Shown one piece after another: positions 12,462-49,091 of a stretch of 64,000 nt of DNA. The position numbers and the translations under genes were made by a program. Below the pieces are notes generated by a model. It saw only the letters and a list, made by a program, of their open reading frames with translations. It was not told the DNA's origin and made no database searches. Each line of letters starts with the position of its first letter. Position 1 is the first letter of the stretch. Source of the stretch: Thecamonas trahens ATCC 50062. Taxonomy: Eukaryota; Protista; Apusomonadida. The stretch covers positions 310,001 through 374,000 of the forward strand of contig NW_013657658.1 of NCBI RefSeq assembly GCF_000142905.1, written 5' to 3'.

Positions 12462-12819
12462 GCTCTCTCCTAATTCCAGCGTCAGGTATGACCCTACCTA
12501 CACACTCCCACACCTCACCCTCACCGTCACTGGCAAGTGGCACCTGTCCACTCGAGATTCGCCTCAACCCCCCCCCCTTCCTTCCCTCAGCACAACAACT
12601 ACTATTTTTTGACGTCCACTCCCCCCACCCCCCAACCTCCAACCCCCCCCCCCAACATCCACCTTGCTTCAAACTCCGTTCACCGCCAACAGCAGCAGCC
12701 CTCACCACCCCACATCCCACCCCACTGCACTCACTCGTTCAATTACACCGCTCACCGTCAAAGGTCATTGCTCCCCAAGCACACGCATACCCCCCTCCAG
12801 GTAGTCGTTGCGACAAAGC

Positions 12820-15800
12820 ATGTCGGGACGTGAGCACTTTGCAGGGGAGGAGGACGGACAGAAGAAGACTGAGGAGGAGCTGCAGCAGGAGGAGGAGATG
12901 GAGCTGGAGCGACGGGTGGAGTACGTCGACGAGTACTGGGCGGAGATGGAGGTTGTGGATCGTGAGCTGTACCCAGAGTTGCGGGAAAAGTCTGGCCGCC
13001 AGTTTCTGGACGCCCTCCTCGAGTCTGCTATCCATGAGGACATCGAGGGCATCGACGCTCTCACTCGGGATGCTGACACCATCAAGGCCACGTATCCTGT
13101 GCGGATGAAGGATGCCAACGGATTCCATATGGAGCAGCCACGTGAGCTCAACTTGCTCCAGATGGCGGCCACCATCGGCCTGCCTCGGGTCCTTGTCGAG
13201 TTCTTTGTCTTTCTTAACGGCACTACCATGGTCGACCGCGATGGCAACACCCTCCTGCACTACATTGCCTCGCAAGGCCATGTGGCGTGTCTGCTTGCCC
13301 TTCTCGACGAGGAAGACGACATCAAGGACATCTCGGTTGAGGATCTTGTTGTCATGAACAAGCGCAACGCCGAGGGCAAGACGCCGCTGCATCTTGCGCT
13401 CGAGTACTCGGACGTGCTCACTCGCGTCATCTACGACGATCCCGAGGGGTTTGCTGCCGAGGAGCAGGCGGTGGCCCAGGCCCACGTCGAGGCACGCCTC
13501 CAGGTTGCAGAGTTTCTCCTCAAGACCCTGTACAACACGCCATCGCCGCTCAACCCCACCGCGTTTGAGGATCCGGCCAACTTGCACTGCAAGGATGACG
13601 TCGGCACCACCGCATTCCACAACCTTGCTCGCCTCGGCTCGCTCCCTCTTGCTCGCTCTCTCATTACTCACTTTTCCAAGAACCAGAGCGAGCTGGCGGT
13701 GACCGACTCGCTCGGCGCCACCGTCCTTCACGTCGCCACCAAAGACCGCCGCGAAGAGTTTGTCCTCGACTTGCTCGCCGTCCTCGAGCCGGCGGGCGGC
13801 AAGCGAAAGAACCACGCGCTCTCCCCTTTTGCCCGCGACAACTTTGGCAAGTCGCCGTTCTACTACGTCGCCTTTCACGACATGACGTCTGCGCTCACTA
13901 CCATGATCCGGTTCATTCCCTCGGACGACGAAGAGCTGCTCCACACTGACCGCCTCGGCCGGACACCGCTTCTCCTCGCCGCCGACCGGGGGAGCGTCAA
14001 CGCCATGGCCGAGCTTGTCAAGCGCCCTTCTGCCACCGCCGTCGACGCTTTTGGCCTCACGCTTGCCCACTACACGGCGGCGCGGCTCTCGGCCACCCCT
14101 GTTCTCGACGACGTCTTTGGCTACCGCCAGGTCCCGCTCTTTGAGCCGACTATGACCGACATTGCGTCCAACAGTCCGCTGCACTATGCAGTGCGCTATG
14201 CTCAAGGTGACGCCGTCCTCCGCATGCTTCGTGAGCCCGGCATGACCGCCACGCCGAACGCGCTCGGCGACACCCCGCTCCACATTGCGCTCCGGGTGAA
14301 GAACCTTGCCGCTGCTACCGTTCTCCTCGACCACGACACGCCCGAGTACCCGCACGTCTTTCCCGAGCCCGAGCCCGAGGCCCTCCGCGCCATTCTCGCC
14401 TCTACAGACTCGGGTCTTGGAGCGGACGTCCTTGAGACCGAGGGCCGATCGGGGGCCAAGTCGGTCGCCCGCGACTTTGCCACCGCCATCAGCATGGCGG
14501 GCCTTGGCGGCCGCACTCCGCTGCACGAGCTCCTCCGCGCGCCGTCGCCGACCGAACTTGCCGCCGGCAACGTCCTTGTCCATCCCGAGTACATTGCCGC
14601 CGCTGCCGCCGAGGCAAAGGACGCGCTCGCTTCGGGTCTTGTCGACCTCGAAGACGTCATTGCCCACGACGAAGGCCACGACGTCGCTCTTCTCAACGTC
14701 ACCCCCCGGGTTTTCCCATCCGCACAAAGTCGGGCAAGCTCGTCGGGTTCCAGTTTGACGACGCCTCGCCGTTTCCTTATCCACGAGCTGCGGGCGAGGT
14801 CAACGACGCCATCGACTCCTTCCATGACATGCTTGCGGCCTTTTACGCTGAGCCCGGCTCAGCAGACGACCCCTACAATGGCGAACGCGAACCCGAGGTC
14901 GCTGACCAGCTTGATCTCGCTGCTGTGGTGGAGAGCTTGCTGCTCAAGCATGCGCCGGTTGGCGCCCGCGACGCCGCAGGCCGCACCTGCCTCCACGACG
15001 CCGCTGCCTCACCGGTCGTCTCGCACATTGTCTACCGCCAGCTCTTCCTGGGCTCGGACGAGAGGTTGGCTAATGCAAAGTACGTCGTCGCCACCGACAC
15101 GAGCGGGAACACGCCAATTCACGAGGCTGCCGGTGCCGGCAACGGTGCCGCACTTCTCATCTTTGCATCGAGCTTCGCCTCGTGGGTCTCTCGCAAGCAC
15201 ACCCGGCCCTCGCTGCTCGACACCAATGCCTCGGTTGGTGGCGGCTCGACCGGCCGCTCCGCCGCTGACGCTGCGAGTCAGGACGACTTTATCGAGCTCA
15301 CCGATGAAGAGTTGGAGGTTCAGGACTTTTTCAGCAACCTTCTCGGTGACGATGCTGTTGTCCTCGAAGACTTGGCTGTAGCTGGTCGCCATGCGCTCGG
15401 TCGACTCGTCGCTGCCTTCCGGGAGCCGAACGCCGACGGCCGCACCCCGCTCATGCTCGCCGCCGCCGCCGGGCACGACGCCGTCGCCATCATGCTCCTC
15501 AAGGTTGCCGGAATCGAGGAACTGTTCTTTGCCGATACTGATGGCTGCACAGCTTTTCTCCTTGCCTGTCGCGAGGGCGCCACCGGCCTCATCTCCACCA
15601 TGTTTGAAGAGATAGAGAGCTACGAGCCGCTGCTCGCTGCGAGGACCAAAGCGGGTGAGTCTGGCATGGTCCTCGCTGCCAAGCACGGCCGCCTCGAGCT
15701 GCTGCAGGACGTCCTCATCCCAGGCCTCCAAGATTCGCCGCGGCTGCGCCACGCTGCCTGCACCCTCGACACCATGGGCTGGTCCGTCCTCCACTACCTT

Positions 15801-18800
15801 GCGGCTGTTCCTGCGGTTGAGCCCGTCATTTATCTCGACGAGCGCAAATCGCTCGCGCCAGTGGTTGGCGACGCCAGTGGCGCGGCCTCGGTCATTACCT
15901 CTCTCCTTGGCGCACTTTACGATTACCACGACCCGACGACCGACACGCTCAACTTTGGGTTCATCTTGAGTGCCGGAACAAGCACAGCCAAGCTTGCAAC
16001 ACCGCTGCACATTGCGACTCGATTTGCTAACCCGCATGCTGCAGACGCCCTGTGGCAGTTTATGGCGTCGACATCGCTGCCAGAGCCGCTCGACAACTTT
16101 GACCTTGCCTCGGTTGCGCTCCTCTGCGACGCGTATGGCTTCAACGTCGTCCACTACGCCGTCATCCACGACATGGACAACCTTGTGGGCGACATGATGC
16201 AGACCTCCATTGCCGAGGCTGCTTTCGAAGCTCGCGCCGTTGTTCCTCCCCCGACTCCCCGCGGGCGCGAGTTGAGCCAAGGCAAGACGCCTTGGCCGCC
16301 GTCCAAGTCTGACCTTGTCGCCGCCATCGAGGGCATCCGTCGCTCGGCCGCCACTGCCGCGCATCTGCCACATGTCCCGCTCACCGGGCCGGGCTCGCTC
16401 GTCGCTGACGAGGGCACTACAGACTTTGTCGCCCCACACTTTGACCGCTCGCTCGAGTGGGTGCGACTCGCTGCAGACGTCGAGACCAGGGTTGACGCCC
16501 TTCCGCAAACGCCTCGCGACGACGATCCGCTGCTGGACATTGGCCTCCAGTTCCTCATTTCGCTCGAGGACAAACCGCTCACCGACGCTCAGCGCCGGCA
16601 AGTCCTTTACAACGTTTATGAAGCTCCGGTGATCGACATGAAGTATGCCTCCGAGAATGACGTTGGGCTCACGCCGCTGCAAATTGCGGCACTCTACGGC
16701 TCATCGCTCGCTGGCATTGCGCTGCTCGAAGCCTATCGAGCCATGGCCGACGAGGTGCCATTCAATCCGCTTGACGTCCGCACCGGCTCTAAGATGTCTG
16801 CCACGGAACCGTATGCTGGCTATCTGGCGTGTCATCTTGCCGCGCTCCGACCCGAGTCGGCGGAGCTTCTTGAGGAGCTGCTGAACGACATGGACGACCG
16901 CAACGTGAAGACTCACGACGGATGCAACGCGCTTATGGTGGCGCTCAAGGCGTCCAACTTGGCTGCGGTGCGCGTGGCCCTTACGTTTGCTCGTGCCGAC
17001 ATCTCGGCTGACGCAGGTAGCCTTGCCAAGCGCGCCCGAAAGCATGCGCGCGATGCCTCCCGGCGCGGGCGTGGAACGAACAAGGCCGTCACGGAGGACT
17101 CACGACCGCTGTTGCTCAACACGGTCTCCGAAAGCAATGCCAATATCCTGCACTACCTCGCGGCATTTGACGCTCCTCCCAAGACCAAGGCAGCTGCTGT
17201 GAGCCTGGTCAAGGAGGCTATTGCTGAGGCCGAGGCCGAGGCCGAGGGCGTTGACACTCCTCAGCCGGTCTTCGTGTCAGCTTTTTCGCTTGGGCCATCG
17301 CGGCTGCTTGAGGAGCTGCTTGTCACCGCAGACACGACATCGGGCGGCACGCCGCTTCACATTGCCACCAAGATGGGAAACGCTCACTTTGTCGACGCTT
17401 TTGTGGACGTTGTCCTCTCCGCGCCACCTTCGCCGCTCGGATCTCTGTTCGCACAACGCGACGCCAATGCGATGACGCCGGTGGCGTATGCCGTCGTCAA
17501 CACTATGAAGCCGCTTCTCGACCGGCTCTCCAAGGACAAGGGAAAACGGCTCAGCTCCGAGGTGCTCGCTGCCCGCGCCGGCGGCAAGGCCTCGCTCCTT
17601 CTTCTCGCGGCGGCGCGGGTGTACTACGAAGCCGAGCTCGACGCTGCGGTCGAAGCATCTCTCGCTGACAACCCCGCTCTCGAGAGGTTGGTTACCGGCG
17701 TGCCCCTCGCAGGCGCGCCAGAGGCTGGGCACAACAGCGACGACGACCGCTGTTCCGACTACGGTGACGACGACGAGTCGGGCTTTGGTGGTGGCCAAGA
17801 GGGCGGCCCGGTGGGCCATATTGACGACGTCACCTCGCCGATCGAGGCTGCGCTCTCCGTCCTTGATCTCATCACCTCGGCCATCCAGGCAGCCGAGCAG
17901 CCACTGCTCCTTGTACAGGATATTTGCAACCGCGCGTCGCTTGTCAACGCGACTCTTGTTGGTCAAGCGGCGTGTGCGCGTGCTGCGGTCATCGGCGCCG
18001 ACGCGGTCGCCTTTGTGGCGGACCTTGACGCGCGGCTGGAGCTCGAGTCCCATCTTCGGAGCGGGACCGCGCTGCATCTCCTCGCTGCCACTCTTCCAGC
18101 CGCAAGCACGACTGCGCGCGTGCTCGGTGGACTTCTTGCCGAGTTTCCGGCGACTCTCGACGTTTCTGGTCCACTGCAGTGGCTTGCAGCGCGCGATCCT
18201 AGCCGCGGCGAGGCCACGCCGCTGATGGTGGCGGTAGAGGCCGGAAACCTGCCTGTGGCGGAAGCGCTCATCAAGCTCTTTGTTGACTACTCTGCGCTCA
18301 ATGTAGCGGCGCATCTCGCGCTCACCAACTCGGCCGGCGAGAACGTCGTTCACCTCGCGGCCCGCTTTGGGCGGTCGTCGGTGGTCAAGGCCATTCTTGA
18401 CTCGAACGCCGACGGCGCACTTCTCAACGCCCGCGGCGGCCCGCACGGGGCCACACCTTTCCTCGAGGCTGCCTCCTCGTCGAGTGTCACCCTCGTGCGC
18501 ATGCTCGAGGAGCTCCCCGAGATCGACGTTTCGGTGCGTGACGCTCGCGGCGCCTCGGCTGTTCACTATGCTGTCTCGTCGCCGCGGGCGGTCGACATGC
18601 TTGCCTTTCTCCTCAGCCTACCGCAGCTCGCGGATGGTACAGCCACTGTGGACCGGATCGAGGTCTCGCTAGATGATGCCGATGCGCCGCACTTTGAGTA
18701 CACATGCCCGTGGCTCAAGGGCACGCCCGCTGGTGTTGATCCCGAGCTGGTGGATCTTCTCTCCTCGGGCCACAACAACGAGCTCAACACCGGGGCCGGG

Positions 18801-21800
18801 ACTTCGGATTCCCGTAGCGGCAATCTCGCGTCGACGAAGAAGAATCCTGACGCAGCCCAGTCCCGCACCGGCTTTCTCTTTTCGGTCTCGGAGCGGCGGT
18901 ATGATGGCAAGACGCCGCTGTTCCTCGCGCTCGAGGCCGGTAATGCCACGCTCGCTGCGGCACTTATGGAGCAGCCGTCGTTTGTGGCGGCGACGCGTGA
19001 CGCCCGCGACGAGACGCTGTACCATGCTGCTGTTCGCGGGCGGCTTCCTCAGTTCATCTCGGTCCTTGACGAGAAGATCTCCCAGACCAAGTCAGCCATG
19101 CACAAGATGAGCTCGCTCTCACCGAAGGCCGTGCCAAGCTCGATAACTTTCTGGCGCGGGCATCGGCCGAGCCCAACATTGATGGCGAGACACCGCTCCT
19201 TCTTGCTGTCAAGAGCTGCCTTTGGCCAGCTATTGCCCAGCTCCGCGAGACGTACGAGCTTGAGCTGCCGCTGAACGCCACTTCGCCCATCGCAGCTGCG
19301 CTTGAGCAGCACAATTATCCGCTGGCGATGCACCTGTTTTCAGCATCGGCACCCAAGTCGCAGAGCTGTGACGTCGCCGAGCTGGTGATCCAGCCATTGC
19401 TTTTTGCCGCGCACGCCGCCACGGACTCGTTTGCGTCTGCTGACGGCTGGCAGAGCGGCGCCAAGCCGACGAGTGCCTCGCAGCCGCGTTTTGCCGGTGA
19501 TGAAGGCGAGAAGAACCTCAACTCGGGCCTGGCAACGCTCTCGCCGTTTGACGATCGTCCCGAGAGTGGCTTGCTGCACGAAAGACTCGCGCTCGGCTAT
19601 GTGTACCAGGTTCTCGGACTTGAGCTCACCCGGGTGTCGCTCGTCATGGACCACGGCGCGTTCGCAAAGGCGCTCGAGGCGTGTGCCGCCGGCAAGCTTG
19701 CTGGTGCGGCGCACGCACTGCTGGCCTTTCAGCGGCTCATTCCGTCGGCGCGGGTTCTGGCAGAGGCAGCATCAGGCACCGGTACGGCGACTGCGTTTGG
19801 TGGTGCGCGCGGTGGCATTGGCGGCGCACTCGGGGGCTCGAGCCCGACCCTGGACTCGATGTTTGCGCCCCGTCAGGCGACACTCTTGCTTGCGTCGTTT
19901 GTGCGGTACGGCGTGACAGCTGTTGTCCGGACCATTCTCAAGTACGGCCTCGTGGCGTCTCCGTTGGACCACCCTGACAACTTTAACCGCAGTGTGCTGC
20001 ACATTGCGTGTGCCGCCGGAGCCCACGACGTGGCTGAACTCATCCTCCGTTTCGCGTCGGAGAGCCAGGTCAACGATCCAGGCTTCAAGGAAATGACACC
20101 ACTGCATCTTGCGGCACGGGCAGGTCTTGGAACCGTTGCTAATCTGCTTGTGCTCTCTTCGGGCGCCAACGCTGCCGCCGAGTCCAACAACTCACAGACT
20201 CCGCTGCATCTGGCCATTCTTTCACGTCGCGAGGACATTGCACTGCTACTGGTGGCGGCAGCACCCGAGTCGGTGGTCATCGCAACCCCGGAGGGCTACC
20301 ATGCCGGACATTTGGCGGCACGCAAGGGCCTCGGCCCGGTTGCCTCGACCCTCTTTGCTTCGCAGCACATTCGGCTCGACGCGACTTCTGGCGATGGTGA
20401 CGCCAACTCGGAGCTCTCTCTTCTTGCTGCTGTTGCGCATGGTGGCTCACCGTTTGTTCTTGCTGAGCTCCTGCGCGAGCGGAGTAACCGGATGAACAAC
20501 GAAGTGGGCAAGGTCGACCGACGCGAGAGGCGTTTGTACAAGGACCAGTCACAGACCAAGAGAACGCTGCTGAATATGTTTTCGGTCACTGCTGTCAACG
20601 ACGCGCTCAGCACGGCATTCGACGCACGCTCGGACGTCGTCATCCGCAAGATGCTCGCTCGGACGGCGTCAATGCTGGTGGAGCCCGAGTTTGAGCTGGA
20701 CAACTCGAGCGAGGAAGTAGTCATGACCTCGGCCTTTGACGTTGCACCGCTGCTTCGGCGGGTGGTGACATCGCCCAAGTGCAGCACCGAACGCGAACCA
20801 CTTGTGCTCGAGCTCTTTCATACGCTCTCGCCAGTGACACCGCTCAACGACATTGCAACAGCTTCTGGAGTTGTCTGCAGGTTGCCTCTCCTTGTCAATG
20901 ACCTGATTTGCAGCGCTCCGGGAGCCGCCGTCTTGTCAGACCTGATGCGGATGGCGACGCAGTATGGAACGGCACCCGAGACCGTGTTTGCCGCGCTCCA
21001 AGTGGGCTCGCGGTTGGAGTGGGACGTGCGGATGGGGCTCCAGGTCGTGTTTGACGACTGCCCAGGCCTTTCGCTGATGATCATTGCCACGCTGGGAGTG
21101 GACGAGGCTGTCAAGGACGAGGCCGTCAAGGAGGCGTGTCTCTCCTGCAATCCGTGGGACTACGCGTTTCTCACGTTTGCGTTGGACCAGCGACAGCCGC
21201 AGCTTGCGTACGCTGCGCTGGAGGCGTACTGGCGGAGTGGCGCATCACGTGAGCTGCCAGCCGAGTTTCACACCTCGCACGGTTGGTACTGGTCACCTAT
21301 GGCCAAGGCCATTGTCTCGCGCCACCTGGGCCTGCTCCGCATTCTGGGCGACTCCGTTGATGGGAAGATTTTTTCGGACCAATCGATCTCGCCGCTGGCA
21401 TCTGCGGTCGAGAAGGGTGACACTGCGGGTGCACTCGTCCTGCTCTCGTGCATCCGCGAGGCGACTTCGGCCGACGCCGAGCAGGTGTTCCTCACCTCAG
21501 GCTTGGAGGACTCGTCGACTCTGGAAAAGGCTGTCTCGCTCAAGATGGTTTCGGTAGTGAGGAGCATGATCTCGGTCTGGCCCGACTTCCTGGCGAGCCA
21601 GCAGGGTTCGGCAGCGCGGTCGGTAGTGGTCGAGGCCCGCGGCGAAGTCGCGGTTGTCCTGCTCTCCGCACTCCAGCTAGGTGCGCGCTCTACGCCGCAC
21701 TCGCTGCGTTACGAACGTCAATGACCTGATTTGCAGCGCTCCGGGAGCCGCCGTCTTGTCAGACCTGATGCGGATGGCGACGCAGTATGGAACGGCACCC

Positions 21801-24800
21801 GAGACCGTGTTTGCCGCGCTCCAAGTGGGCTCGCGGTTGGAGTGGGACGTGCGGATGGGGCTCCAGGTCGTGTTTGACGACTGCCCAGGCCTTTCGCTGA
21901 TGATCATTGCCACGCTGGGAGTGGACGAGGCTGTCAAGGACGAGGCCGTCAAGGAGGCGTGTCTCTCCTGCAATCCGTGGGACTACGCGTTTCTCACGTT
22001 TGCGTTGGACCAGCGACAGCCGCAGCTTGCGTACGCTGCGCTGGAGGCGTACTGGCGGAGTGGCGCATCACGTGAGCTGCCAGCCGAGTTTCACACCTCG
22101 CACGGTTGGTACTGGTCACCTATGGCCAAGGCCATTGTCTCGCGCCACCTGGGCCTGCTCCGCATTCTGGGCGACTCCGTTGATGGGAAGATTTTTTCGG
22201 ACCAATCGATCTCGCCGCTGGCATCTGCGGTCGAGAAGGGTGACACTGCGGGTGCACTCGTCCTGCTCTCGTGCATCCGCGAGGCGACTTCGGCCGACGC
22301 CGAGCAGGTGTTCCTCACCTCTGGCTTGGAGGACTCGTCGACTCTGGAAAAGGCTGTCTCGCTCAAGATGGTTTCGGTAGTGAGGAGCATGATCTCGGTC
22401 TGGCCCGACTTCCTGGCGAGCCAACAGGGTTCGGCAGCGCGGTCGGTAGTGGTCGAGGCCCGCGGCGAAGTCGCGGTTGTCCTGCTCTCCGCACTCAAGC
22501 TAGGTGCGCGCTCTACGCCAATGGAGAGTAGCCAGCCTGAGGTCTCTCTCCGCGACTCGGACGTGGAGACTAAGGTCATGATCGAGCCGTTTGCGTACAT
22601 GTGTGCAAGCCAGTGTATGCCTGGTGTCCGCTTCTTGCTCACAGATCCAATTCCGGGCATGAACAAGACGTCGGGTAACGTGAGCCCGACGGCGTACACG
22701 CCTCTCCACTACGCGGCGGCGTCGGGCAATGTCGACCTGCTGTGTCGGCTGCTCGCCATTCTCGCGCCGTATGGTGAGCTGCTTAGGGCCGCTCTTGTCG
22801 AGAACGAGAACCCGGTCAAGGCGACGCCGCTTGTGGCGGCGCTGATGAAGGGCAAGGCCGGGACAGCCATGGTGCTCATCAAAGGCATGGCGGCGATGCT
22901 TCCGCCTGATGAGCTCGTCGCTGCGCTGACGATGCTCTCGGACCAGGACGGCTCGGCCATGCACTTTGCTGCTCGCGCCGGCCTCACCGAAGTCGTCCGC
23001 ACCCTCATCCGCCTTGGCGTACCGGCATCGGGCAAGCTGGACGCATCGGACCTCCCCTCGCCGCTCCTCCGCTCAGTCATGCAGCTGTCGTCGACGGCGT
23101 CGGCCTCCGAGCATGTCGAGACTGCGCGCTACCTGCTGGCGTCTGGTGCCGATGTGGGTGGCAAGGGGGCGAGTGGAAAGACTGCGCTGCACTACGCGGC
23201 TGAGGTGGGCTCGCTTGAGCTTGTTCTTGCTCTTTTCAAGAACTCGTTGGTGGGCGACAGGCTGGGACGGAGTGCGTTGCACTATGCCGCCATGGGAGGA
23301 CAAGTCGCTGTGGCGCTTGCCATTCTCTCAGCTTCGGTCTCGCCGTCATCGCTTGTTCGCACCGACAGCTTTGGCGCGGCTGCTATCCACTATGCTGCCG
23401 TCTCGTCCCACCCGCGCAGCTACCTGGTGTGCCGGGCTCTTCAGGCCTTCCAGCATGACGCTGAGCTTGCTCCGGTGACGGCGTCGCACGTCGACCCTGG
23501 TGTGGTCTCGTTGGTTGACCACGTCGACGCGATGCTCTCGCTCCGTGGCGGCAGCGAGCTCTCGACCGCCATGTGGCTGCGGCTGGTCAAGACGCCACTC
23601 TGTCTTGCGGCGCTGCTGGGCAACACGGCATCTGCGCTGGCGCTTCTCCGCGCTGGCGAGTCGCCAGCCCCCACAGAAGCGCAGGGCGGTCATAGTCTCG
23701 CATCCGTCCTTGTCGCGTCTGCTGTGCTAGGCGCCACGACCATCGGGCGAGCTGTTCTTCGACTGGCGGCCTCCGAGGAGTGGCTTGATGTCTCTGTCAC
23801 GTCGCTGCTTCAGACAAAGACGCCAGCCCAGCGGGAAGATGGCAGCCAGGGCGAGACGGGTGGAGCAGGCACCTCCGGTCCCAAGTGGGGTGGCGACGAT
23901 CCAACAGGCAAGGTCCCGCTCGCTGTTGCTGCCAGAGGTGGCAAGTGGGAGTTTGTGCTCGGCCTCATTGCCGCCAACACCGAGCTGCCACGGGCGCAGC
24001 GGTCGACGCTCGAGGAGCTCTCGTCGGAGGTCACGCTCTCTGTAGCCAAGACGAACCAGGTGGACGTGGCCCGTGCGCTGATTGCCAACTACGATCTCCA
24101 ATGGGGTGTGCCTGGCGATGGCGGTTCAGACCTCGCGGGCAAGGCACCTCTGTTTGTGGCATGTGCCAATGGCTCGTGGGAGCTTGCACTCATGCTGCTC
24201 GGTATTGTGTCAACGTCGGAAGACAAACGGCTAGCGGTGAACAACGTGGTGGACCACGCCGGGCCGATCCACTGGGCAGCAGAAGCGGGCCAGATGGCTC
24301 TTATCAAGGCACTTGTCGCTTCGCGAGCCAATGTCAACCTGCTCGACGAGAAGAAGCGGTCGCCGCTGTACATTGCCTGTCAGCAGCGCCACCTCGACGT
24401 GGTCGAGTACTTGCTCCTCAACACGCCAGCGGAAATCATGCGGCACAACTCGCCGGGTGCCAAGCTTCCGCTTCACGCGGCATGCTCGGCCGAGGCGATT
24501 GACGAGGTAAGGCTCTCCAACCCGGTCTCAATTCCGGTGGTCAAGGCCATTCTCTCGCACGCGCAGATCAAGCAAGTGCTCGAGGTTGAGTCGCGGCCGG
24601 GCTCAGGTGCACTCGCTGGAGCCGGGCGTGGCGAGGCAAACGCAAGCCAAGACAACTCACTGCTGCTCGCGATTACGGGCAGCAACCCGTCACTCGCGCT
24701 TCTCATCATCGACTTTTACAAGAAGCACGCAGTCTCGCTCACCAACTTGCTCAAGACCATGGTCCACACGCTCGCGTCGCGGCAGGTGTGCACGGCTGTG

Positions 24801-27800
24801 GGGCGGTCGGGAGAGCTGGAGCAGACCTTGTTCTACTACAACGGCTATCCGGTGTGTGCCGTGTGTATGAGCACGTGTCGTTTGGGCGATGCCTGGGCAG
24901 CTGATCGTGTAGACACGTTCTCCTGCTGGTGCTTTACGTCTTCGTCGTGCAAGGTTCGCGAGGCGCTGCCGCGCAAGCTCTTCACCTCTGTGGTCACCAT
25001 TCTCATTGGCAAGGACGCAACGATCGAGCTTGAGGACGTGGGCGACGATACCACGTTCCTCATGTACTGCTGCAAGGAGGGGCTTGAAGAGCTCGCGCTC
25101 CTACTGCTGAGCAAGGACGTGGAGGTTGCGGCCACCAACGGCAACAACTCGACGGCGCTGCACTTTGCTGCCGAATTTGGCTTGCTCTCTGTGGTGGAGC
25201 AGCTGGTGTCTGGCCACCGTGAGCTTGCGGTCGACGCTGTCGACAACGACGGGTTCACGCCGCTGCACCTCGCTTGTCGGTCTGGTCACGACGCGGTGGC
25301 CAAGTTCCTTCTCGATGCCATGCGCGACAAGACAGCCGAGGAGCTGTGCAAGACAACGCGTGACCAAAAGACGCCGATGCATTTGCTTGCTCCCAAGATC
25401 ACCCGGATGCCCGAGACATTCAAGACGCTCATCAACCGCGCTTCGCTGGCAATGACCATGCTTGACGCCGAGTCGCGGACGCCGCTGATGATCGCGCACG
25501 AGGTGGACGGTGTCGACCTCAAGACGCTCGTCTCGCTCGTCGCCCTCACGGGCGATAAGCTGCTCCACGCTCCGCCAATTAATCTGGACGTCGAGCAGGC
25601 CCAGTCTTCAGGCCGGCCCAAGTACTCGGCGTCGGTCCTCCACATGGCAGCGCTCAAGGGTGAGCTCGGGCTAGTGCAGGCCATTCTGGAAGAGCTGGGG
25701 AAGCGGACCAAGTCGCAGCTGCGGCTCCACACCGAGCTTGCTTCGTTTGGCATCACAGCGCCGGAGAATGCGGCAGCCTACCCCTACGCTGGCCTCGGCA
25801 CCAAGCTCACGCCGCTGCACCTTGCAGTGATGAAGAGCAGCGCCAAGAGCGAGGCCGACCGGATCGAGATTGTGGAGCTCCTGCTGGCGGCCGATCCGCA
25901 GCTGCTTGAGACACCAGATGGCGCAGGGCGGACGCCGCTCCACCTGGCGGCCGAGGCCGGTTTTGTCAAGGGCGCGGCGGTGCTGGTTGAGTATGCCAAG
26001 CCACGTAATAAGGACATTCTGAATGTCCGCGACGGGTCGGCAGCAAAGCGGACGCCGCTGCGTGTGGCAGTCAAGATGACGACGCCGTCCGCTGAGGCTG
26101 CCAGTGGCAAGGATGCCGTGCCGGTCAAATCGGCACAGCTTGAGATGATCAAGTACCTTGTGGGCGAGGGTGCGCTTCTTGCACCGGATGACGGGAACAC
26201 AGGGCGGACCGAGCCGATTCTGCATGAGCTCATCAAGCTCCCAGACGCAGCCATTCTCGATGTGGTCGAGAAGCTCATCGAACAGGTGGGAGCCGCCGCT
26301 GGCGACGACGACGATGGCAGCGGCAGTGGCGGGGGGCCAGTTGCACAAGAGTTTGTTGGAAACGCTGTTGACAACCGCGACGAGTACGGGTTCGCCGACG
26401 GCGAAAGTGTCTCCGGTGACGGATCCGAGGGTGGCGTCGACCGCAACTCTCCGCGGGGAGCGACATCGCGCGGTGGGCGGATGCAAGAGCTGGCGAACGA
26501 GGTCGACGGTGACGGCAACACGCCGCTGCATGTGGCATGCAACAACGTGGCACTGCCCGACATGGCACTGCTGCTCATGGAGCACTTGCCGGGACTCGAT
26601 GTCAATGCACAGAACCATCTTGGCGAGACACCGCTAATGCGGCTGGTGATGGCGTCAGACGGAGCCAAGTCCAACCTCGACGAAGTCATCACTGAACTCA
26701 TCGCAGCAGGCGCGGACACGTCGCTTGTGCGGCGGTCGGACGGCGGCACAGTCCTCCATGCCTTGCTGGAGAAGGAGACGTCTACGGCGGTCGGGTATGT
26801 AGAGACCATCATCGATGCGCTCAACGAGTTTGAGGGCACCGATGTGCTCAAGGCGACCGTGGTTACGAAGAACCGCTCCTCGCGCAGCCCGCTTCACGTC
26901 CTGCTTCTCAACAAGAAGCTCGACCGGTCGCACCGAGTTTTGGTCCGCAAGCTCATTGAGGCTGGAGCAGACGTGACCGACACGTGCGACGGTGGGCGCA
27001 ATGCGCTCATGCTTGCGCTCAACGCAAGCAAGGACGTGTTTGCACGTGAGGTGCTTGACGCGCATGGTGACCAGATGCCGGGCTCGCACAACGACCGGCA
27101 AGTGGCGCTGCAACACTATGGGCCGATGCTGGAAGCGACCGACGACCACGGGGCTACTATCCTGCACTATGCGCTGCGGAACAAGCATGTGGCTCTGGCG
27201 CGACAGTTCCTGCCGGACCCCGCGGCGTCGTACGGTGGCGATGATGCACTGTTCGAGTCGCAGGAGTTTGGGGGCGGGACTTATCGCAAGCACCGGATGT
27301 CGCGCAACGATTCGACCGCGTCGGGCATCGGTCCCTACGATGCATACGACGAGTATGACGATGATGGCGAGCGGCTGAGTGCACGTAGCGGGCGCGGTGG
27401 GTATGGTGGCGGACACGATGACGAGATGTCGATGCGGTCCGGGATGGGTCATGGCGAGGCTGCGCCGCTGGAGAACGAGTACAACTTGCCTGCCGAGTCG
27501 CGCGAGCGCATACTCCTTGATGCACGCGATTCTGAAAATAGCAACATGACTGCGCTGCATCTTGCGTGCAAGGAGGGAGCGTGCAAGCAAGTGGCGCTGG
27601 ATATTGTGGCGACGGGGCGGGCCGACGTCAATCTCGCTGACTACAACAGCAAGGTCGCTCTCCACTACGCGAGTGAGACCGGTGCCAAGGACCTTGTCAA
27701 GGCGCTGCTGCTCCGCGGACTCGCCAACCCAACACTCCGTGATGGTTCAGGGCAGACCCCGCTCCACTCCGCCATCCAGCACGGTCACGACGACGTGGCC

Positions 27801-30800
27801 AAGACGCTCCTTGCAGAGTTTTCGGCGACAATGTCGCAAATCATTCCACGCGAGCGAGCGCGCGAGGCAGCCGAGCAGGCAAAGGCTGCTGCGGCTCGCG
27901 GACACGAGGTCCACGAAGGAGAGGCCCCCGTGTTGGACGAGGAGTTGGAAGCTGCTGGTGGCGCGGCCAGTGCGGTTGCCTTTGACGGGTCGATGTCGAA
28001 GGAGCAGGTTGCGCGGGCAGTGGCCAAGGAGCGCGAGACGTTTGTCAATGGGCTCTGCGGTGGCTACACGGCACTGCATCGGGCGCTTGTCAACCAGCGG
28101 CTGGGCCTCTTGCAGCAGCTCTTTGTCTCGGGCGCGTCGCTGGTATCGCGGACGGTGATGTCGCCCGAGGGCGATACGCCTCTTCACCTCGCAGCGCGCG
28201 AGTGCCCGAAGGCCATTCCGGTGCTGCTGGAAGAGGCGCGGCGGCAGTCACTGACGGCGCTGCAGCTGGATGTCAAGAACAGTGCAGGCAACACGCCAGT
28301 CCATGTGGCGGTTGCATCGGACGCGCCCGAGCTACGGGATCTGCTGCAGTTCCCGTTCTCGCCAAATGCGTTCAACAACAAGCTCCAGACGCCGCTCTCG
28401 ATTGCGATTGAGACTGAATCCGCAATGGTCCAGCACTTGCTGGAAAACTCGGCCAAAGCGGACGTGCTGGTGCGTAAGGGCGACGACTCGTCCGACTCGA
28501 TGCCGGTCGGGCTCCTTCATGTGGCACACGAGAAGCGGCGGCCTGAGCTGATGAAGATGCTGCTGGACAAGGGTGCCGATGTGGTGTCGGTCAATGCGGC
28601 CGGCGAGAACATCCTGCATGTGCTTGTCAAAGAGAAGAACAACGACATGGGCTTCCTGCAGTCGCTCATTGGGCGAATTGGAACAGGCATCAACGCGGTC
28701 ATTCCGTCGTCTGGATTTACGGCGCTACATTTTGCGGCGCAGGAGGGCATGGACGACCTGACCAAAACGCTCATCTACTTTAAGGCCAAGGCGATGCCAC
28801 GACGCACCTCGGGCAGACGCCGCTGCACCTGGCGACGCTCCGCGGGCATGCGCACATTGCGGAGCAGCTTGTCCGGGTCAACTGCGGGCTCAACATCCAA
28901 GACTACAAGATGCGGACGGCGCTGCACATTGCGGCGGAGCGTGCTGATTTGGCGATTGTGGCGTCGATCCTGTCGACGCGCAAGGCCGAGCTGCATTTGC
29001 AGGACATGAATGGGCGTGTGGCGTCGCAGCTGTTGTCCAAGACGCCTGCTGCGCGTGCGCTGATGGCCGAGTACGCATCGCTATCGCCTCGGGCGCCGTA
29101 CGCGCTCTCTGTCCGGCGGATGTACGCCGCCGGATCGAACGCGTTTGGAGAGCTTGGTCTGCCGCAGTCGGCCACGGAAGGCTCCGGGCCGGGCTCGTCT
29201 GGAGCCGGCGAAGCGCGCGGCGCGTCGCTGAGTCGGAACAAGTCGCGGCGGTGGGGCAAGGGCCCGAGCGTGGGGGCGCTCTCGCACGTCGAGTTCTTCC
29301 GGCGAAAGCGGGCGACGTTTGTGGCGACGGGCTCGTACACAACGCTTGTGGTGTTTGACTCGGGCGAGGTGTACACGTTCGGGTGGAACGAGCAGGGTGA
29401 TACCGGTTTTGATGCCAGCGAGAACGTTGTGGAGATGCCGCGGCTGATGAAGGCACTGGAGGGGGTGCACATTGTGACGGGCTCGATGGGCTCGTCGTTT
29501 GGTGCAGTGGTCTCGGACGCCGGCGCTGTGTACACGTTTGGTGCTGACAATGACGGGCAGCTCGGGCGGCCATCGGGCTCATCGATGCCGTCGCCCGGAG
29601 GGGAGGTCGGGCTTGTAGCCGACCTGGTGGGTGAGCGGGTAGTGGAGATCTCGTGCGGCGCATCGATGGCAGGTGTGGTGACGGACGGCGGTGAGCTGTT
29701 CACGTGGGGACGGGCGCGGGCGACCGGACGCGGGACGACTGCAGTTGTGCCACCGGGCAAGGCCCTCGGGTTTGTGCCCGAGGACCTTGTGGAGCGGTTC
29801 GAGACTTCGGGCACGCTGTCTGTGGCGATCACGCGGCGGCTCGACACCGAGTTTTCGTTTGTGTACGCCGCTGGCGAAGACACGTACGGAGCGGTGGGCA
29901 TGGGCCGCGACGACTTTGTGGAGTCGGAGTTTACGCTCCTGCCGACGCACTCGGTGCCCGGGCTCAAGACGCAGCTGCTGGACGTGGCTGTGGGCCAGTG
30001 GCACGTCCTTCTCCTCACAGCCTCTGGTGAGGTTTACGCGTCTGGCACTGCAATGTACGGGCAGATTGGACTCGGGTCTGCGGCGTCTGTGGCGACGTTT
30101 ACCAAGATCAACCATGGGCTCGACGAGCCAATTGCAAAGATTGACGCCGGCAGGTACCACTCGTCGGCGATTTCGCGGAGCGGAGTGTGGTACTGCTGGG
30201 GCGACTCTGCATACCGCAAGAACGGGCACATTGCGGACGAGACAGTGTACGCACCGCGCAAGGTGGCGCTGACCGAGACGGATGTGCTCGAGCATGTGGC
30301 GTGCGGCGTCGAGTACACGCTGTACATCAACTCTGCTGGCTCGCTGTTTGGCCTCGGCTACAACGACTACTCGTGCCTTGGCCTGGCCGGGGCGTACAAG
30401 TGGGCGACCGTGAGTCCGCCGGTGGAGGTGACGTCTGTCACCATTGGACTGCCGTCTATGATGGCAGTTGGGCTCAACTTTACGGCGGTAGTGACCGAGA
30501 ACGGCGGGCTCTTTACGTACGGCCACAACGAGTCTGGCCAGTGCGGGCGAAAGAGCAGCACACGGGTCGATGTGGCGCGAGTGGGCATCGGCGGGCGGCA
30601 CGACCAATTTGAGTACGTGGTCCAGGCTGTGACTGCTGGCGACTACCATGTGGCCGTCATCGATGAAGTCAACGATCTCTACACCATGGGCCGCAACGCC
30701 GCTGGGCAGCTTGGGCGTGAGACCGATGGTCTCTTTAGGCACGAGCTGGGCAAAGTCGAGTTCCCGCGGGTGCCGACCAAGGCGCGTGAGTCGTCAGCGA

Positions 30801-33800
30801 GTGTTGGTGGCGCCGCTGGAGCGGAAGGCGCGTCGGGTACGAGCGCCGAGCTGGTGGCCAAGTCGGCTGTGATGACCAAGCCGGATAAGGTGAAGGTGTT
30901 CCTTGTGTCTGCGTTTGCGGATACGACTGTGGCGTACACGTCTGCGGGTCTCTTTGCATGGGGCGCCAACGATTCGGGCCAGCTCGGGATCGGGTACAAG
31001 TCTGAGCGCGAGACCACGCCGAAGCTTGTGCAGCTCGAGCACACGGTGGTGCAGATTGCCGGCTCGCGCAACATCACGATGTTCCTCACGGCGGAAGACG
31101 GTCTGTTTGTGACCGGCGAGGGCAAAGCACTTGGGCCGATTGGGCCAACGTCGACGCCGCGGCGGGTGACCGTGGAGGACACTACCATCAACGAGGAAAA
31201 GTCGGTGGTGTTTATCGCTGCGGGCCCGCGGTTCTGTGCCGCGGTGACGTACGATGGGCAGCTGTGGATGGTAGGCGATCTGGCAAGCTCGCGGACGTAC
31301 ACGCGTGTTGACTTGTATGACCCGCTTGGGGCGTTTACGGTCATCGAAGTCGCACCGTACGGCGACGGGCTTGTCTTTCTCACCGACTCGGGTGAGCTCC
31401 GCGAAGTGATGGAGGTCTCAGAGGGCCCGTCTGCGGGCGAGGCTGTAGAGGCGCTGCTGGAGTCGGGCAAGGTGCTCACGTTTGGTACGGTCTCGTCGGA
31501 GCTGAAGACGGTGCTCGACAACGACGACGACGACCACCGGCAGGTGGTGCTCTCGATGGCCGGCTCTGCGTCGCACCTGACGGTGTCAACGATGCAGCTA
31601 ACGCTATGTGGTGAGCGGATCAACAAGAACGAGTACATGCCGCCGACGGTGCTCGTGCTGGGGCTCCCGCGGGGAACAAGCCAGGAGCTTGTGCGGAGCC
31701 GGTTCTCGAACTACGGCACGGTGGTCTCTGTCTCACTCCAGCTGTTCAAGCGGGCGGCGTTTGTAGGGATGGAGTCACTGGCAGCAGCCGAGGCGGCGGC
31801 GGCGGCGATGCACCTCAACTTTGTCGAGTTTGGCGAGCGGGTGGCGCGGGTCAAGGTCCGCGTCCTCCCCTCGTGTGCGCTCGAGTGCGAGGTTGCCGAG
31901 TCGCCGATGCCTCGGTCGGACTTTTGGTACCGGTGGCGCGACGTGCGTGAGCTGCCGTTTTCGCGGTCCGACCTGCTGACAGAGCACCCGGAGCTGTCGT
32001 ACGCGCTCTCGCCACTGCTGTTGTGCTCCAAGTGCACGCGCGACAAGGGCTTCAAGTACGCCATCACCAAGCGGTCCAAGTGCCGCGAGCTCTCCCGCGA
32101 CGAGGTGGCGAAGAAGGTGAACGAGTGCCAGGCGGCCGGCCGCAAGTACCTTGACGATGCGTTCCTGCCGAGCGAGGCTGCGTTGTGGAACGATCCGGAC
32201 AAGCCTGGTGACCCGCACTACATCACGTATCCGTCGACGTGGCGCCGGCTGTCGGACTTGTTTGAGACGATGCCTAACCCGCGTGTGTTTATCGACGGTG
32301 CGGAGGGTGCCGACGTGGAGCAGGGCGGGATTGGGACGTGCTACCTTTTGGGATGCGTGGCGGTCCTTGCGACGAACCAAGAGTACATTGAGAAGGTGTT
32401 CATCAAGCCGTGGAACGTCGACGTGGGCATTTACTCGCTCATGTTCTCGCACAACAAGCTGTGGAAGTACGTCATCATCGACGACTACGTACCGTGCCTG
32501 GAGAGCACTCAGGGCGCAGATCCGTGGGAGAACCCGCTGCCTGTCTATGCGTGGTCAGCCGATCGCAACGAGATGTACGTCATGCTCATCGAGAAGGCAT
32601 ACGCCAAGTTTAAGGGTTCGTACGAGGCCATTGACGGCGGTGTCGACCGGTACGCCATGGTGGATTTGACCGGCGGCGTGTGCGAGGCGCTCAAGTTTGA
32701 CGACCCGAAGATCTCGCGATCGCTCAAGACCGGTGCGTTCTGGGAGACGATGGTACTGTACAAGGCGCAGAACAAGCTCATGTCATGCTACATTGAGGAC
32801 CTGAGTGCAGACAACGAGGAGCCGACGGAGCAAGGCTTGCTGAAGGGTCACGCGTACGCAATCACGGGTGTGTGCGTGGTCGGGGCCAACCGTCTCCTGC
32901 AGATCCGCAATCCGCACGGGTCGACAACATGGTCGGGCGCTTGGCACGACCTCAAGCAGGAGGTTGTGGGCGGCGACGTGGTTGACGACGGCCAGTTCTA
33001 CATGTCGTACAATGACTTTATCAAGGGCTTTACGGCGGTCGACGTGACGACGCTGCTTCCAGACTCGGACGACGTGGCGCTTCCGGGCGCGAGTCCCGGG
33101 TCGCGCGCGCACGACGCGGGTGGGCTGGATGTCGAGGATCTCGACACGCTCGAGCTCGCAGTCAAGGCGCTGTCGGGCGCGGTCGAGAACCTGCCGTATG
33201 CCGATGGAGCGCCGGCGTCGCTGGGCGCAGCAAGTACAGAGAGCTCGGGAACACCGTCGGGTGGAGTGACAGGCAACGCTGCGCCGCTGGCTGGCGGCGC
33301 GGCGCAGCCGGCAGTGGACGCGCTGACCGACAAGTTGCGGTCGATGGCGGAGAATCCGGCAGCGGACGCTGTGGTGGACCCGACGCTCGCGGCGGCGTGG
33401 ATGATCGATGGAACGGTGACAACGTCGTCTCTGGGCGGTGAGTCCGAGACGGCGTCGGGTGCACGGAAGCAGGTCTTCCGGCTCGACTGGGCCGAGGGCG
33501 AGTCGGGTTGCCGCAAGGCGTTTGCGCTCAAGCTTGGGCGCAAGGCGGCAGACGTGACGGTGGAGATCCGGCAGCAGACTGCGGATGAGTCGGCGATCGA
33601 CGGCAAGGCCGTGACGCTGCTTGTGTGTCGGTGGCGGACGGGTGTTGACTACTTTCCGGCCAACCGCGAGCGCGGGGCGGTGCTGGCGTCGGACCTGCGA
33701 ACGGCAGACATTGTGGACCGGATCTTCCCTTCGCGGGCCACCAAGGCATCGCTCTCGCTCTACCTTCCGCCTTCGAAGGACTACACATACGTCATTGTGC

Positions 33801-34858
33801 CATCGCTGATGTCGGCCGGTCCGCACACAGCGTTCCTCTCAATCTTTACCTCGTCGACGGTCCGGGTTGATCCGGTCCAGCTCGTCGAGTACTTGTGGGA
33901 TTCCAAGCCCGCCACAGAGAGAGACATTGTGGAGGGGACCGGTCAGTTCTTTGTCTTCCGTGACGACGCCGTCGAGACCGACGAAGAGGACGAGTCGGGC
34001 GAGGATCCGCTCGACGCCGAAAAGGCAGCGCTTCAGGAGGCGGCTGTCGGTCTGCCGGCATCGCTGCATCCGGTCACCGTCGGCGGTACCTCGTTTGCAC
34101 CCGCCCGCGTCTCGCTTGAGCAGCTGGCGGCCGAGGCGGCGGCTGTGCCCCGAGCTGCCGCAGCTCCAGACATTGTGCCCGGGCCAGTTGCAGGCGTGGC
34201 ATCGCCAATCCCACACGGGCGACTTGCACCGCTCAACCCGTACGAAGCGCCAGCGCCGGCGCCAGCTGCTGTGCCTGGGTACGCGGCGCCGAGTCCGAGC
34301 TATCCAGCATACCAGGCCTACCCAGGCGCCCAAGGCTTCCAGGGCCATCAAGTCTACCAGGGCTACCCGAGTCCGGGATACGGCGGCCAGACGGTCGGCC
34401 AGGGCCAGGCTCCGGCTCCGGTCCATGCGGGAGCGTACACAAGTCCACTTGTGGCCGGCGGACCGTCTGGCCTCGAGCCCCGCTATGGTGGGATGGTACC
34501 GGTGCGCGAGACACGGCCATCGTCGACGGCATCGTCGATGTACATGTCGCAAGCATCGGAAGAGGTGTTCGGGGGCATCTCGACCCGGGCACAGCCGAGC
34601 GGCCGCGGACAGGGACATGTCGGCGGCGGAGGGCAGCTCCCGGCATTGCCGCGGCGGCAGGGCGGCGTTGGCCGCGGCACAGAGGCTGGGTCGGCCGAAC
34701 GCAGCCCGATTCCGCGGCGTGGCGGCGGCGGAGGCGCACCGAGCCGACGCGACCGCGGGCGAGGCGCGGCGGCGCTGCCGCGGCTGCCGCGCGAGGCGAT
34801 GGCGGCGCGGGCGGCGCGGCGGACACCGCCTCGGCGGCCGCGGCGCGACAATCCGTAG
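12820..34858 (+). CDS. Giant ankyrin-repeat / UBR-like Zn finger / RCC1-repeat / RRM / calpain (CysPc plus domain III-like) protein, ~7,070 aa after repair
   Basis: Five ORFs (12808, 14829, 19328, 21681, 28910) fuse in frame after adding one base at C6 14702-14707, near 19095-19105 and near 28789-28792, and removing 823 bp (20894-21716). The last two repairs restore ankyrin motifs (GETPLLLA, GQTPLHLA). RCC1 motifs (VYTFGWNEQG, LFAWGANDSGQLGIG), RRM (TVLVLGLP...AAFVGM), calpain triad QGGIGTCYLL / GHAYAI / IRNPHG. Confidence 0.75.
20894..22519 (+). repeat. Direct duplication of 803 bp (20894-21696 and 21717-22519) with a 20-bp spacer
   Basis: Copies are offset by 823 bp. I see three substitutions (TCA/TCT, CAG/CAA, CAG/AAG). 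Spacer gcactcgctgcgttacgaac. Confidence 0.92.
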
Positions 34859-37254: not shown

Positions 37255-37723
37255 NNNNNNNNNNNNNNNNNNNNNNNNNNNNNNNNNNNNNNNNNNNNNN
37301 NNNNNNNNNNNNNNNNNNNNNNNNNNNNNNNNNNNNNNNNNNNNNNNNNNNNNNNNNNNNNNNNNNNNNNNNNNNNNNNNNNNNNNNNNNNNNNNNNNNN
37401 NNNNNNNNNNNNNNNNNNNNNNNNNNNNNNNNNNNNNNNNNNNNNNNNNNNNNNNNNNNNNNNNNNNNNNNNNNNNNNNNNNNNNNNNNNNNNNNNNNNN
37501 NNNNNNNNNNNNNNNNNNNNNNNNNNNNNNNNNNNNNNNNNNNNNNNNNNNNNNNNNNNNNNNNNNNNNNNNNNNNNNNNNNNNNNNNNNNNNNNNNNNN
37601 NNNNNNNNNNNNNNNNNNNNNNNNNNNNNNNNNNNNNNNNNNNNNNNNNNNNNNNNNNNNNNNNNNNNNNNNNNNNNNNNNNNNNNNNNNNNNNNNNNNN
37701 NNNNNNNNNNNNNNNNNNNNNNN
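37255..37723. other. Assembly gap (N run)
   Basis: 469 Ns. Confidence 0.99.
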
Positions 37724-48402: not shown

Positions 48403-49091
48403 NNNNNNNNNNNNNNNNNNNNNNNNNNNNNNNNNNNNNNNNNNNNNNNNNNNNNNNNNNNNNNNNNNNNNNNNNNNNNNNNNNNNNNNNNNNNNNNNNN
48501 NNNNNNNNNNNNNNNNNNNNNNNNNNNNNNNNNNNNNNNNNNNNNNNNNNNNNNNNNNNNNNNNNNNNNNNNNNNNNNNNNNNNNNNNNNNNNNNNNNNN
48601 NNNNNNNNNNNNNNNNNNNNNNNNNNNNNNNNNNNNNNNNNNNNNNNNNNNNNNNNNNNNNNNNNNNNNNNNNNNNNNNNNNNNNNNNNNNNNNNNNNNN
48701 NNNNNNNNNNNNNNNNNNNNNNNNNNNNNNNNNNNNNNNNNNNNNNNNNNNNNNNNNNNNNNNNNNNNNNNNNNNNNNNNNNNNNNNNNNNNNNNNNNNN
48801 NNNNNNNNNNNNNNNNNNNNNNNNNNNNNNNNNNNNNNNNNNNNNNNNNNNNNNNNNNNNNNNNNNNNNNNNNNNNNNNNNNNNNNNNNNNNNNNNNNNN
48901 NNNNNNNNNNNNNNNNNNNNNNNNNNNNNNNNNNNNNNNNNNNNNNNNNNNNNNNNNNNNNNNNNNNNNNNNNNNNNNNNNNNNNNNNNNNNNNNNNNNN
49001 NNNNNNNNNNNNNNNNNNNNNNNNNNNNNNNNNNNNNNNNNNNNNNNNNNNNNNNNNNNNNNNNNNNNNNNNNNNNNNNNNNNNNNNNNNN
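48403..49091. other. Assembly gap (N run)
   Basis: 689 Ns. Confidence 0.99.

Follow-up and report, generated by a model that had tools for sequence, protein, structure and literature searches.

A window of 64,000 nucleotides (nt) from the genome of the flagellate Thecamonas trahens ATCC 50062 (contig NW_013657658.1, positions 310,001 to 374,000) was analyzed. Positions given below are those of the window, and all features lie on the plus strand unless stated otherwise. The gene of interest occupies positions 12820 to 34858 and consists of five successive stop-free segments located at 12805-15378 (frame 1), 14436-19271 (frame 0), 19070-21721 (frame 2), 21681-29006 (frame 0) and 28784-34855 (frame 2). 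These segments run without a stop for 858 to 2,442 codons in DNA with a GC content of 63%; outside the N stretches, the GC content of the window is 61 to 69%. The first ATG is at 12820, after a C/A-rich leader, and the stop codon is at 34856-34858. When joined across four frame breaks, termed J1 to J4, the segments encode a corrected protein of 7,072 residues with no stop, in which a very long ankyrin region is followed by RCC1-like domains, an RRM-like domain, a calpain protease core (CysPc), a beta-sandwich and a low-complexity tail. We read this stretch, with a probability of roughly three in four, as one intact single-exon T. trahens gene (∼21.2 kb) for a cytosolic non-classical calpain, with the four breaks being faults of the assembly.

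The coding sequence was divided into five pieces. Piece 1 (12820-14706, frame 1) encodes an acidic N terminus and, from about 13243, the first ankyrin repeats. Clusters of ankyrin repeats with acidic and degenerate inserts are present in piece 2 (14709-19121, frame 0), and the 3′ end of piece 3 (19124-21696, frame 2) is formed by copy A (20894-21696) of an 803-nt repeat. Piece 4 (22520-28790, frame 0) contains the densest ankyrin arrays and a Cys-rich insert at about 24561-25049, and piece 5 (28793-34855, frame 2) carries the entire C-terminal module, preceded by the final two to three ankyrin repeats. The joined reading, which has an X at each of the three single-base breaks and omits one copy of the repeat, was used for local mapping only; database searches were performed with single uncorrected pieces or with the public protein, not with the joined reading. 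A first-pass annotation of this DNA had proposed a single intron-free gene over 22 kb, interrupted at four junctions and encoding a protein of about 7,070 amino acids (aa). The size agreed with that of the corrected reading, and the proposal of a single gene was supported by the open segments, by the evidence at J2 and J3 and by an uninterrupted paralogue (see below). Four frame breaks are present as proposed, but J3 is an 823-nt duplication and not a frameshift.

The gene is represented in the public record by AMSG_05321 (XP_013758031.1; KNC49323.1), an "uncharacterized protein" of 7,268 aa from T. trahens ATCC 50062 with 100% identity, which carries the name "Ankyrin repeat protein" in UniRef. 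The public model spans the four breaks by "introns" of 32, 50, ∼34 and 119 nt and keeps both copies of the repeat. The 32-nt "intron" at J1 extends from 14698 to 14729, and the 119-nt "intron" at J4, from 28698 to 28816, takes out coding sequence. AMSG_05321 contains four invented introns and a duplicated stretch of 274 residues.

Contigs from sequencing runs were placed on positions 16500 to 22400, a region that covered J2 and J3 only. The runs were derived from the organism itself (X1), from estuary and marine metagenomes of separate samples (X4 and X9, respectively) and from a metatranscriptome (X14). At J2 (19121-19123), where frame 0 changes to frame 2, the assembly is one C short after 19121, having CC where there should be CCC; the additional C was present in X4, X9 and the own-organism run X1. 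With this base added, the reading passes from frame 0 to frame 2 with no residue lost, and the 50-nt intron placed here by the public model is incorrect.

At J3, a surplus 823-nt period (21697-22519) was detected that consists of a 20-nt filler (21697-21716) and copy B of the repeat (21717-22519). Copy B is 99.6% identical to copy A, and the filler is unrelated. An X14 metatranscriptome contig tracked the window to 21696 and then resumed at 22520 without the 823 nt, and omission of one period (823 = 3n+1) fuses frame 2 to frame 0 exactly. One DNA contig from X4 also departed from the window at 21697. All three differences between copies A and B fall in the final 198 nt of copy A. X4 and X9 had the letter of copy B at position 21499, and the X1 contig of the strain itself ended at 21498. 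This cluster of differences, together with the junk filler, resembles an unmerged read end of low quality.

Other features of the placed contigs were noted in the same region. Sequence of the gene at 16500-21700 was present in X4, X9 and X12 (estuary and marine metagenomes), and most of the contigs were ≥99% alike, indicating that near-identical strains of this flagellate exist in nature. A tract of GAGGCT-type repeats encoding Glu-Ala (17215-17604) gave loose ends in all of the runs. Within this tract, a joint from 17255 to 17604 in X4 and X9 skipped 348 nt in frame, with one side of the joint resting on 21 letters; this skip may represent repeat-length variation or an artefact. Two extra C residues at 17098-17100 were present in X1 alone and not in X4 or X9, and these are probably read errors since two added bases would break the frame.

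A paralogue was found elsewhere in the T. trahens genome as an uninterrupted frame of 7,650 codons on the minus strand (G000:C13:438074-461023). The domain order of this C13 paralogue is identical to that of the window protein, with ankyrin arrays followed by RCC1-like domains, an RRM-like domain, Cys doublets, CysPc, a beta-sandwich and a tail, and the two proteins are collinear from the N to the C terminus with 25 to 31% identity. The existence of an intact paralogue of this size indicates that the giant design is real, old and maintained, and it rules out chance as the origin of the open frames. The catalytic Cys of the paralogue is replaced, resulting in a dead active site. A second long frame, of 2,581 codons (G000:C13:430268-438010, minus strand), is located directly downstream of the paralogue.

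The other two breaks, J1 and J4, lie outside the region of contig placement. J1 (14702-14707, frame 1 to frame 0) is at a C6 homopolymer, which is followed by G3, T4 and C3. J4 (28785-28795, frame 0 to frame 2) is located within an ankyrin repeat whose halves are in two frames; the alignment to the paralogue extended to residue 5423 upstream of this break and from residue 5426 downstream, with no gap across it. On the basis of these sequence contexts, we infer a one-base undercall at both sites, which would make J1 and J4 shifts of the same type as J2, with one base missing. When the residues immediately past J4 were used to scan metagenome contigs of the Joint Genome Institute (JGI), distant RCC1 proteins alone were detected (27 to 31% identity), and no near-identical short protein fragments over J4 were found; these results weigh neither way. 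Most probably, J1, J2 and J4 are single-base undercalls, with J2 alone having been shown directly, and J3 is a false tandem duplication of 823 nt.

Alternatively, the short introns of the public model could be genuine, or ribosomes could undergo programmed frameshifting at the junctions. The public model does have GT..AG pairs enclosing 32, 50 and 119 nt, and a further 82-nt GT..AG candidate (21681-21762) can be drawn at J3. However, with the extra C at J2 in place, the 50-nt intron would break the frame, and the 119-nt "intron" encodes ankyrin residues that can be aligned to the paralogue. The 82-nt candidate was rejected because the duplication is the cause of the break at J3. Programmed frameshifting was also rejected, as J2 is explained by the reads and no slippery heptamer is present at J4. 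Introns or frameshifting sites at these positions are extremely improbable.

Analysis of the first four segments with Pfam detected ankyrin families only, with E values down to 1.6e-119 for Ank_2. Residues 1 to 141 of the corrected protein are acidic, and about 63 ankyrin repeats of 33 residues were detected between residues 142 and ∼5117 with a hidden Markov model built in this analysis (53 of the repeats being confident). The repeats form clusters spaced by stretches of 60 to 340 aa that are either degenerate and helical-repeat-like or acidic and disordered. Hence the first-pass description of about 5,100 aa of ankyrin repeats with acidic insertions was correct in placing ankyrin repeats in segments 1 to 4, but the region is clustered and not solid. 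A zinc finger had also been proposed at about 24786-24953, in the Cys-rich insert of piece 4, and could not be substantiated: the insert matched no zinc-finger family in Pfam at E values up to 5, no UBR-box and no recognisable family, and its Cys cluster has no counterpart in the C13 paralogue.

The C-terminal module starts with tandem RCC1-like domains (29102-31534) of about 13 to 14 blades, which are sufficient for two propellers. Pfam matches in this region were to WD40_RLD (PF25390; 5.9e-94 in three stretches) and RCC1 (PF00415; 1.7e-51). The RRM-like domain that follows (31646-31879) scored 28.2 bits with Pfam RRM_1 (PF00076), for which the cut-off is 20.7. A structural model of this domain exhibited the beta-alpha-beta-beta-alpha-beta order with predicted local distance difference test (pLDDT) values of 81 to 94. 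In a Foldseek search with the model, RRM matches ranked after calpain ones and included the RRM of Puf1 (TMt, 0.88; root mean square deviation, 1.4). A search of the ESM Atlas with the region comprising the RRM and the linker gave weak RRM-type leads only (scores of 0.83 to 0.88). The RRM of the paralogue has fewer RNP aromatics than that of the window protein. As only one of the three canonical RNP aromatics is kept in the window protein, its RRM-like domain may bind protein rather than RNA.

The linker between the RRM-like domain and the protease (31874-32035) contains a pair of Cys doublets. The first doublet is C-x3-C in the window protein and C-x2-C in its relatives, and it is separated by about 45 residues from the second, C-x2-C. 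These doublets are conserved in the relatives and are a possible zinc knuckle; model confidence for the linker was only 57 to 67. The module formed by the RRM and the linker is present at two loci only in the T. trahens genome, namely, those of the window gene and the C13 paralogue.

The calpain core, CysPc (32147-33055), was detected with Peptidase_C2 (PF00648; MEROPS C2) at 205.5 bits (cut-off, 23.8; E value, 1.3e-60), and a sequence match in the PDB was to calpain-9 (E value, 5e-41). Alignment to calpain-9 indicated that the catalytic set is complete, with the oxyanion Gln at 32321, Cys at 32339, His at 32849 and Asn at 32909-32911. An AlphaFold2 (AF2) model of the core was two-lobed, with pLDDT values mostly of 80 to 95, and was matched by Foldseek to the cores of calpain-1, -3 and -9 (E value, ∼2e-26; TMt, ∼0.8). 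Relative to calpain-9, three Asp positions are kept: one lies nine residues before the Cys, one lies 13 residues after the Asn and one belongs to the DGxF motif. At other positions, Gly takes the place of the Arg, Thr that of the Glu located six residues past the Asn, Gln that of the Glu of DGEF and His that of the Trp of NPWG. Both members of the Arg-Glu switch pair are lost. The roles of these positions as calcium ligands and as the Arg-Glu switch are presumably those known from mini-calpain structures. As the calcium switch is partly conserved, control of the window protein may differ from that of classical calpains.

A disordered stretch of about 110 residues is located between the CysPc core and a beta-sandwich (33461-33895) that resembles calpain domain III (C2-like) by fold match alone. 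The model of this domain was built from four sequences and had a mean pLDDT of 63. The top Foldseek matches were domain III of m- and mu-calpain and the C2-like domain of calpain-7, with E values of 3e-5 to 2e-4 and a TMq of ∼0.45; the Pfam profile for calpain domain III (PF01067) gave no match at E values up to 5. No EF-hand family was present among the Pfam matches of the C-terminal 1,982 aa, indicating that this is not a classical penta-EF-hand calpain. The remainder of the protein is a low-complexity tail (33896-34855) that is acidic, then Pro/Tyr/Gly/Gln-rich and then Arg-rich with RG/RGG. In both paralogues, the tail has an Asn-Pro-Tyr motif, after which come Tyr/Gly/Gln/Pro-rich repeats and an RG-rich end. 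Such tails resemble low-complexity regions found in RNA-binding proteins as well as Pro/Tyr-rich motifs to which penta-EF-hand proteins bind.

For this C-terminal module, the first-pass annotation had named RCC1 repeats long enough for about two propellers, an RRM, a calpain domain with intact Cys, His and Asn codons, a domain III-like region and a tail rich in Pro, Tyr, Gly and Arg. The RCC1 repeats and the RRM were recovered by Pfam and, for the latter, by the fold of the model. The three catalytic codons were at exactly the positions proposed, to which the oxyanion Gln was added, and the tail has the same layout in the paralogue. The domain III-like region is probable from the fold match but was not detected by Pfam.

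Two families of relatives of the C-terminal module were detected in Tara Oceans assemblies. One of these (P0003/P0151) shares 46% identity with the C13 paralogue, has a replaced catalytic Cys and is cut by the end of its contig. The other (P0011) is a free-standing protein of 1,860 aa with two RCC1-like domains in which the Cys, His and Asn are all replaced. Both of these families and both T. trahens giants have in common an RRM-like domain, a linker with four Cys, a CysPc and a predicted beta-sandwich at the C-terminal side, and the RCC1 part of the module is likewise shared. Together with the uninterrupted paralogue and the type of tail kept in both giants, these relatives indicate that the design is under selection. 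A search of representative proteins found that, apart from P0003 and P0011, nothing beyond the CysPc core was held in common with other proteins. When the search was limited to proteins of ∼4,000 to 12,700 aa, only the window protein itself and unrelated RCC1 giants were returned. The C13 paralogue was not returned by the latter search, suggesting that public annotation may omit or split this gene.

The occurrence of P0011 as a free-standing RCC1-calpain with its own start could indicate that the window locus is likewise divided into two or more genes, with an ankyrin giant extending to a frame 0 stop at 29007-29009 and an RCC1-RRM-calpain protein of 1,982 aa starting from an ATG that is available at 28910. 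The ankyrin repeats of frame 2, however, run upstream of this ATG, back to 28784, and there is no intergenic space. Furthermore, the paralogue has the same junction within its single frame of 7,650 codons, and its alignment is ungapped over J4. Division of the locus into separate genes is, in our assessment, very unlikely.

Several observations weigh against the reading of the locus as one intact calpain gene broken by assembly faults. Evidence from reads is limited to J2 and J3, and the undercalls at J1 and J4 are deduced. X1 gives no contig over the duplication, which leaves room for a real duplication in the sequenced strain. Expression evidence consists of a few metatranscriptome contigs, which possibly contain DNA. 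The lack of an ankyrin array in P0011 indicates that the C-terminal module can stand alone. The RRM has only one of the three canonical aromatics at the RNP1 and RNP2 positions (there is a Leu in strand 1 and one Phe of two in strand 3), and in the alignment to calpain-9 several of the acidic residues that serve as calcium ligands in classical calpains are replaced.

The limited coverage by reads of the strain itself bears on a further explanation, in which the gene is truly broken in ATCC 50062, as a young pseudogene or through culture damage, and is intact in environmental strains. There are four frame-breaking lesions in one reference gene, and own-strain reads cover neither J1, J4 nor the duplication, with X1 ending at 21498, before the first difference between copies A and B. 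In contrast, X1 contradicts the assembly at J2, and the downstream frames are all stop-free for thousands of codons. The clustering of copy differences at the end of copy A, next to a junk filler, also looks like a low-quality read end. A truly broken gene is clearly unlikely, and an intact gene with a faulty assembly is the preferred reading.

A calpain profile gave 18 matches at about 16 to 17 loci in the T. trahens genome. As a 2012 census of calpains recorded 12 genes and nine variants in this species (PMC3563603), the calpain family is larger than published. The 12 AMSG identifiers in the supplementary table of the census do not include AMSG_05321, and ankyrin, RCC1 and RRM are absent from its 24 calpain partner domains (PMC3563603). 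A 2026 review gives TML, CBSW and MIT only for Thecamonas. Calpain, CysPc and RCC1 were not found together in the literature searched, and there was no mention of ankyrin repeats in the top-ranked, mostly calpain-focused literature. The giant protein is already deposited but undescribed, and its design is absent from the 2012 survey and from later reviews. The first-pass annotation had considered the combination of domains to be undescribed, and this held for the calpain literature searched, including the partner domains of the census. It had further suggested an undescribed system; the design was indeed not in the literature searched, but the protein is already deposited as AMSG_05321, and a paralogue and environmental relatives exist.

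A neighbouring calpain gene, AMSG_05324, is located in the window at 39999-40763 on the minus strand and was described as having a CysPc with His and Asn only (PMC3563603). Its product is 32% identical to the core of the giant, and the possibility that it is a recent tandem copy of the giant was rejected because the identity is only 32%. The window also contains two runs of N, at 37255-37723 (469 bases) and 48403-49091 (689 bases), which represent either gaps in the assembly or withheld sequence.

The window protein resembles non-classical calpains, such as calpain-7/PalB, calpain-15/SOL and DEK1, in having a CysPc with an intact Cys-His-Asn set followed by a probable domain III-like beta-sandwich. 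It also resembles them in the absence of a penta-EF-hand and in the presence of a lineage-specific targeting module N-terminal to the core (PMC3563603). This module consists of MIT domains in calpain-7/PalB, zinc fingers in calpain-15/SOL and a membrane domain in DEK1 (PMC3563603). Unlike those of calpain-7, calpain-15 and DEK1, the N-terminal module of the window protein has about 6,100 residues and consists of ankyrin arrays, two RCC1-like propellers and an RRM-like domain. Trypanosomatid giants such as H49 of T. cruzi are also very large and combine long arrays of repeats with calpain-type domains; they are reported to have a cytoskeletal structural role, contain lineage-specific repeats of 68 residues and are termed calpain-like but are not called active proteases (PMC3214072). 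In contrast to the H49 type, the window protein has ankyrin and RCC1 repeats and a full catalytic set, and no sequence relationship to the trypanosomatid giants was seen beyond CysPc. As to the repeats themselves, the window protein can be compared with large regulatory enzymes of other types. In scaffolds such as IBtk and in RLD giants such as HERC1/2, ankyrin repeats directly precede RCC1-like propellers and act as docking platforms for proteins. The IBtk and HERC types end in BTB or HECT ubiquitin-ligase modules and the window protein ends in a protease; the comparison made here covers the repeat families.

The most economical reading of this architecture would be a limited protease tethered to a scaffold. 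The ankyrin arrays and propellers could form a very long platform for docking, by which the enzyme is fixed to partners or structures. The RRM-like domain and Cys module adjoining the protease might regulate access to it, as do the N-terminal modules of other non-classical calpains, and the calpain core would then perform limited proteolysis of bound substrates. Targeting to membranes or ribonucleoprotein assemblies may depend on the C2-like domain together with the low-complexity tail. The dead 7,650-aa paralogue would probably be a non-cutting partner or competitor. Gating of the protease by RNA or small GTPases, which the first-pass annotation had suggested as possible, is conjecture.

A more specific and, in our view, unlikely proposal is that both giants (about 7,000 aa each), an active protease and a pseudo-protease, form an apusomonad-specific class of calpains in which a spring-like scaffold of ankyrin arrays and propellers keeps a protease at ribonucleoprotein or cortical assemblies and which is controlled by the RRM/four-Cys module and by partners of the tail, not by an EF-hand. 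Penta-EF-hand proteins bind similar Pro/Tyr-rich motifs in other eukaryotes. For such a class, free penta-EF-hand proteins would be a possible partner recruited in trans by the tail.

These findings correct the public gene model AMSG_05321 and indicate that the 2012 census missed both giants. For biochemistry, the protein offers a well-defined target in the fragment that spans the RRM through the C2-like domain; by itself, the protein opens no long-standing question. The targeting and control of calpains outside animals and plants are poorly understood, and the window protein is an extreme case, with its core lying behind a scaffold of about 6,000 residues. In T. trahens, an ancient dead paralogue has been retained beside the giant with the intact active site, in a lineage close to the animal/fungal root.

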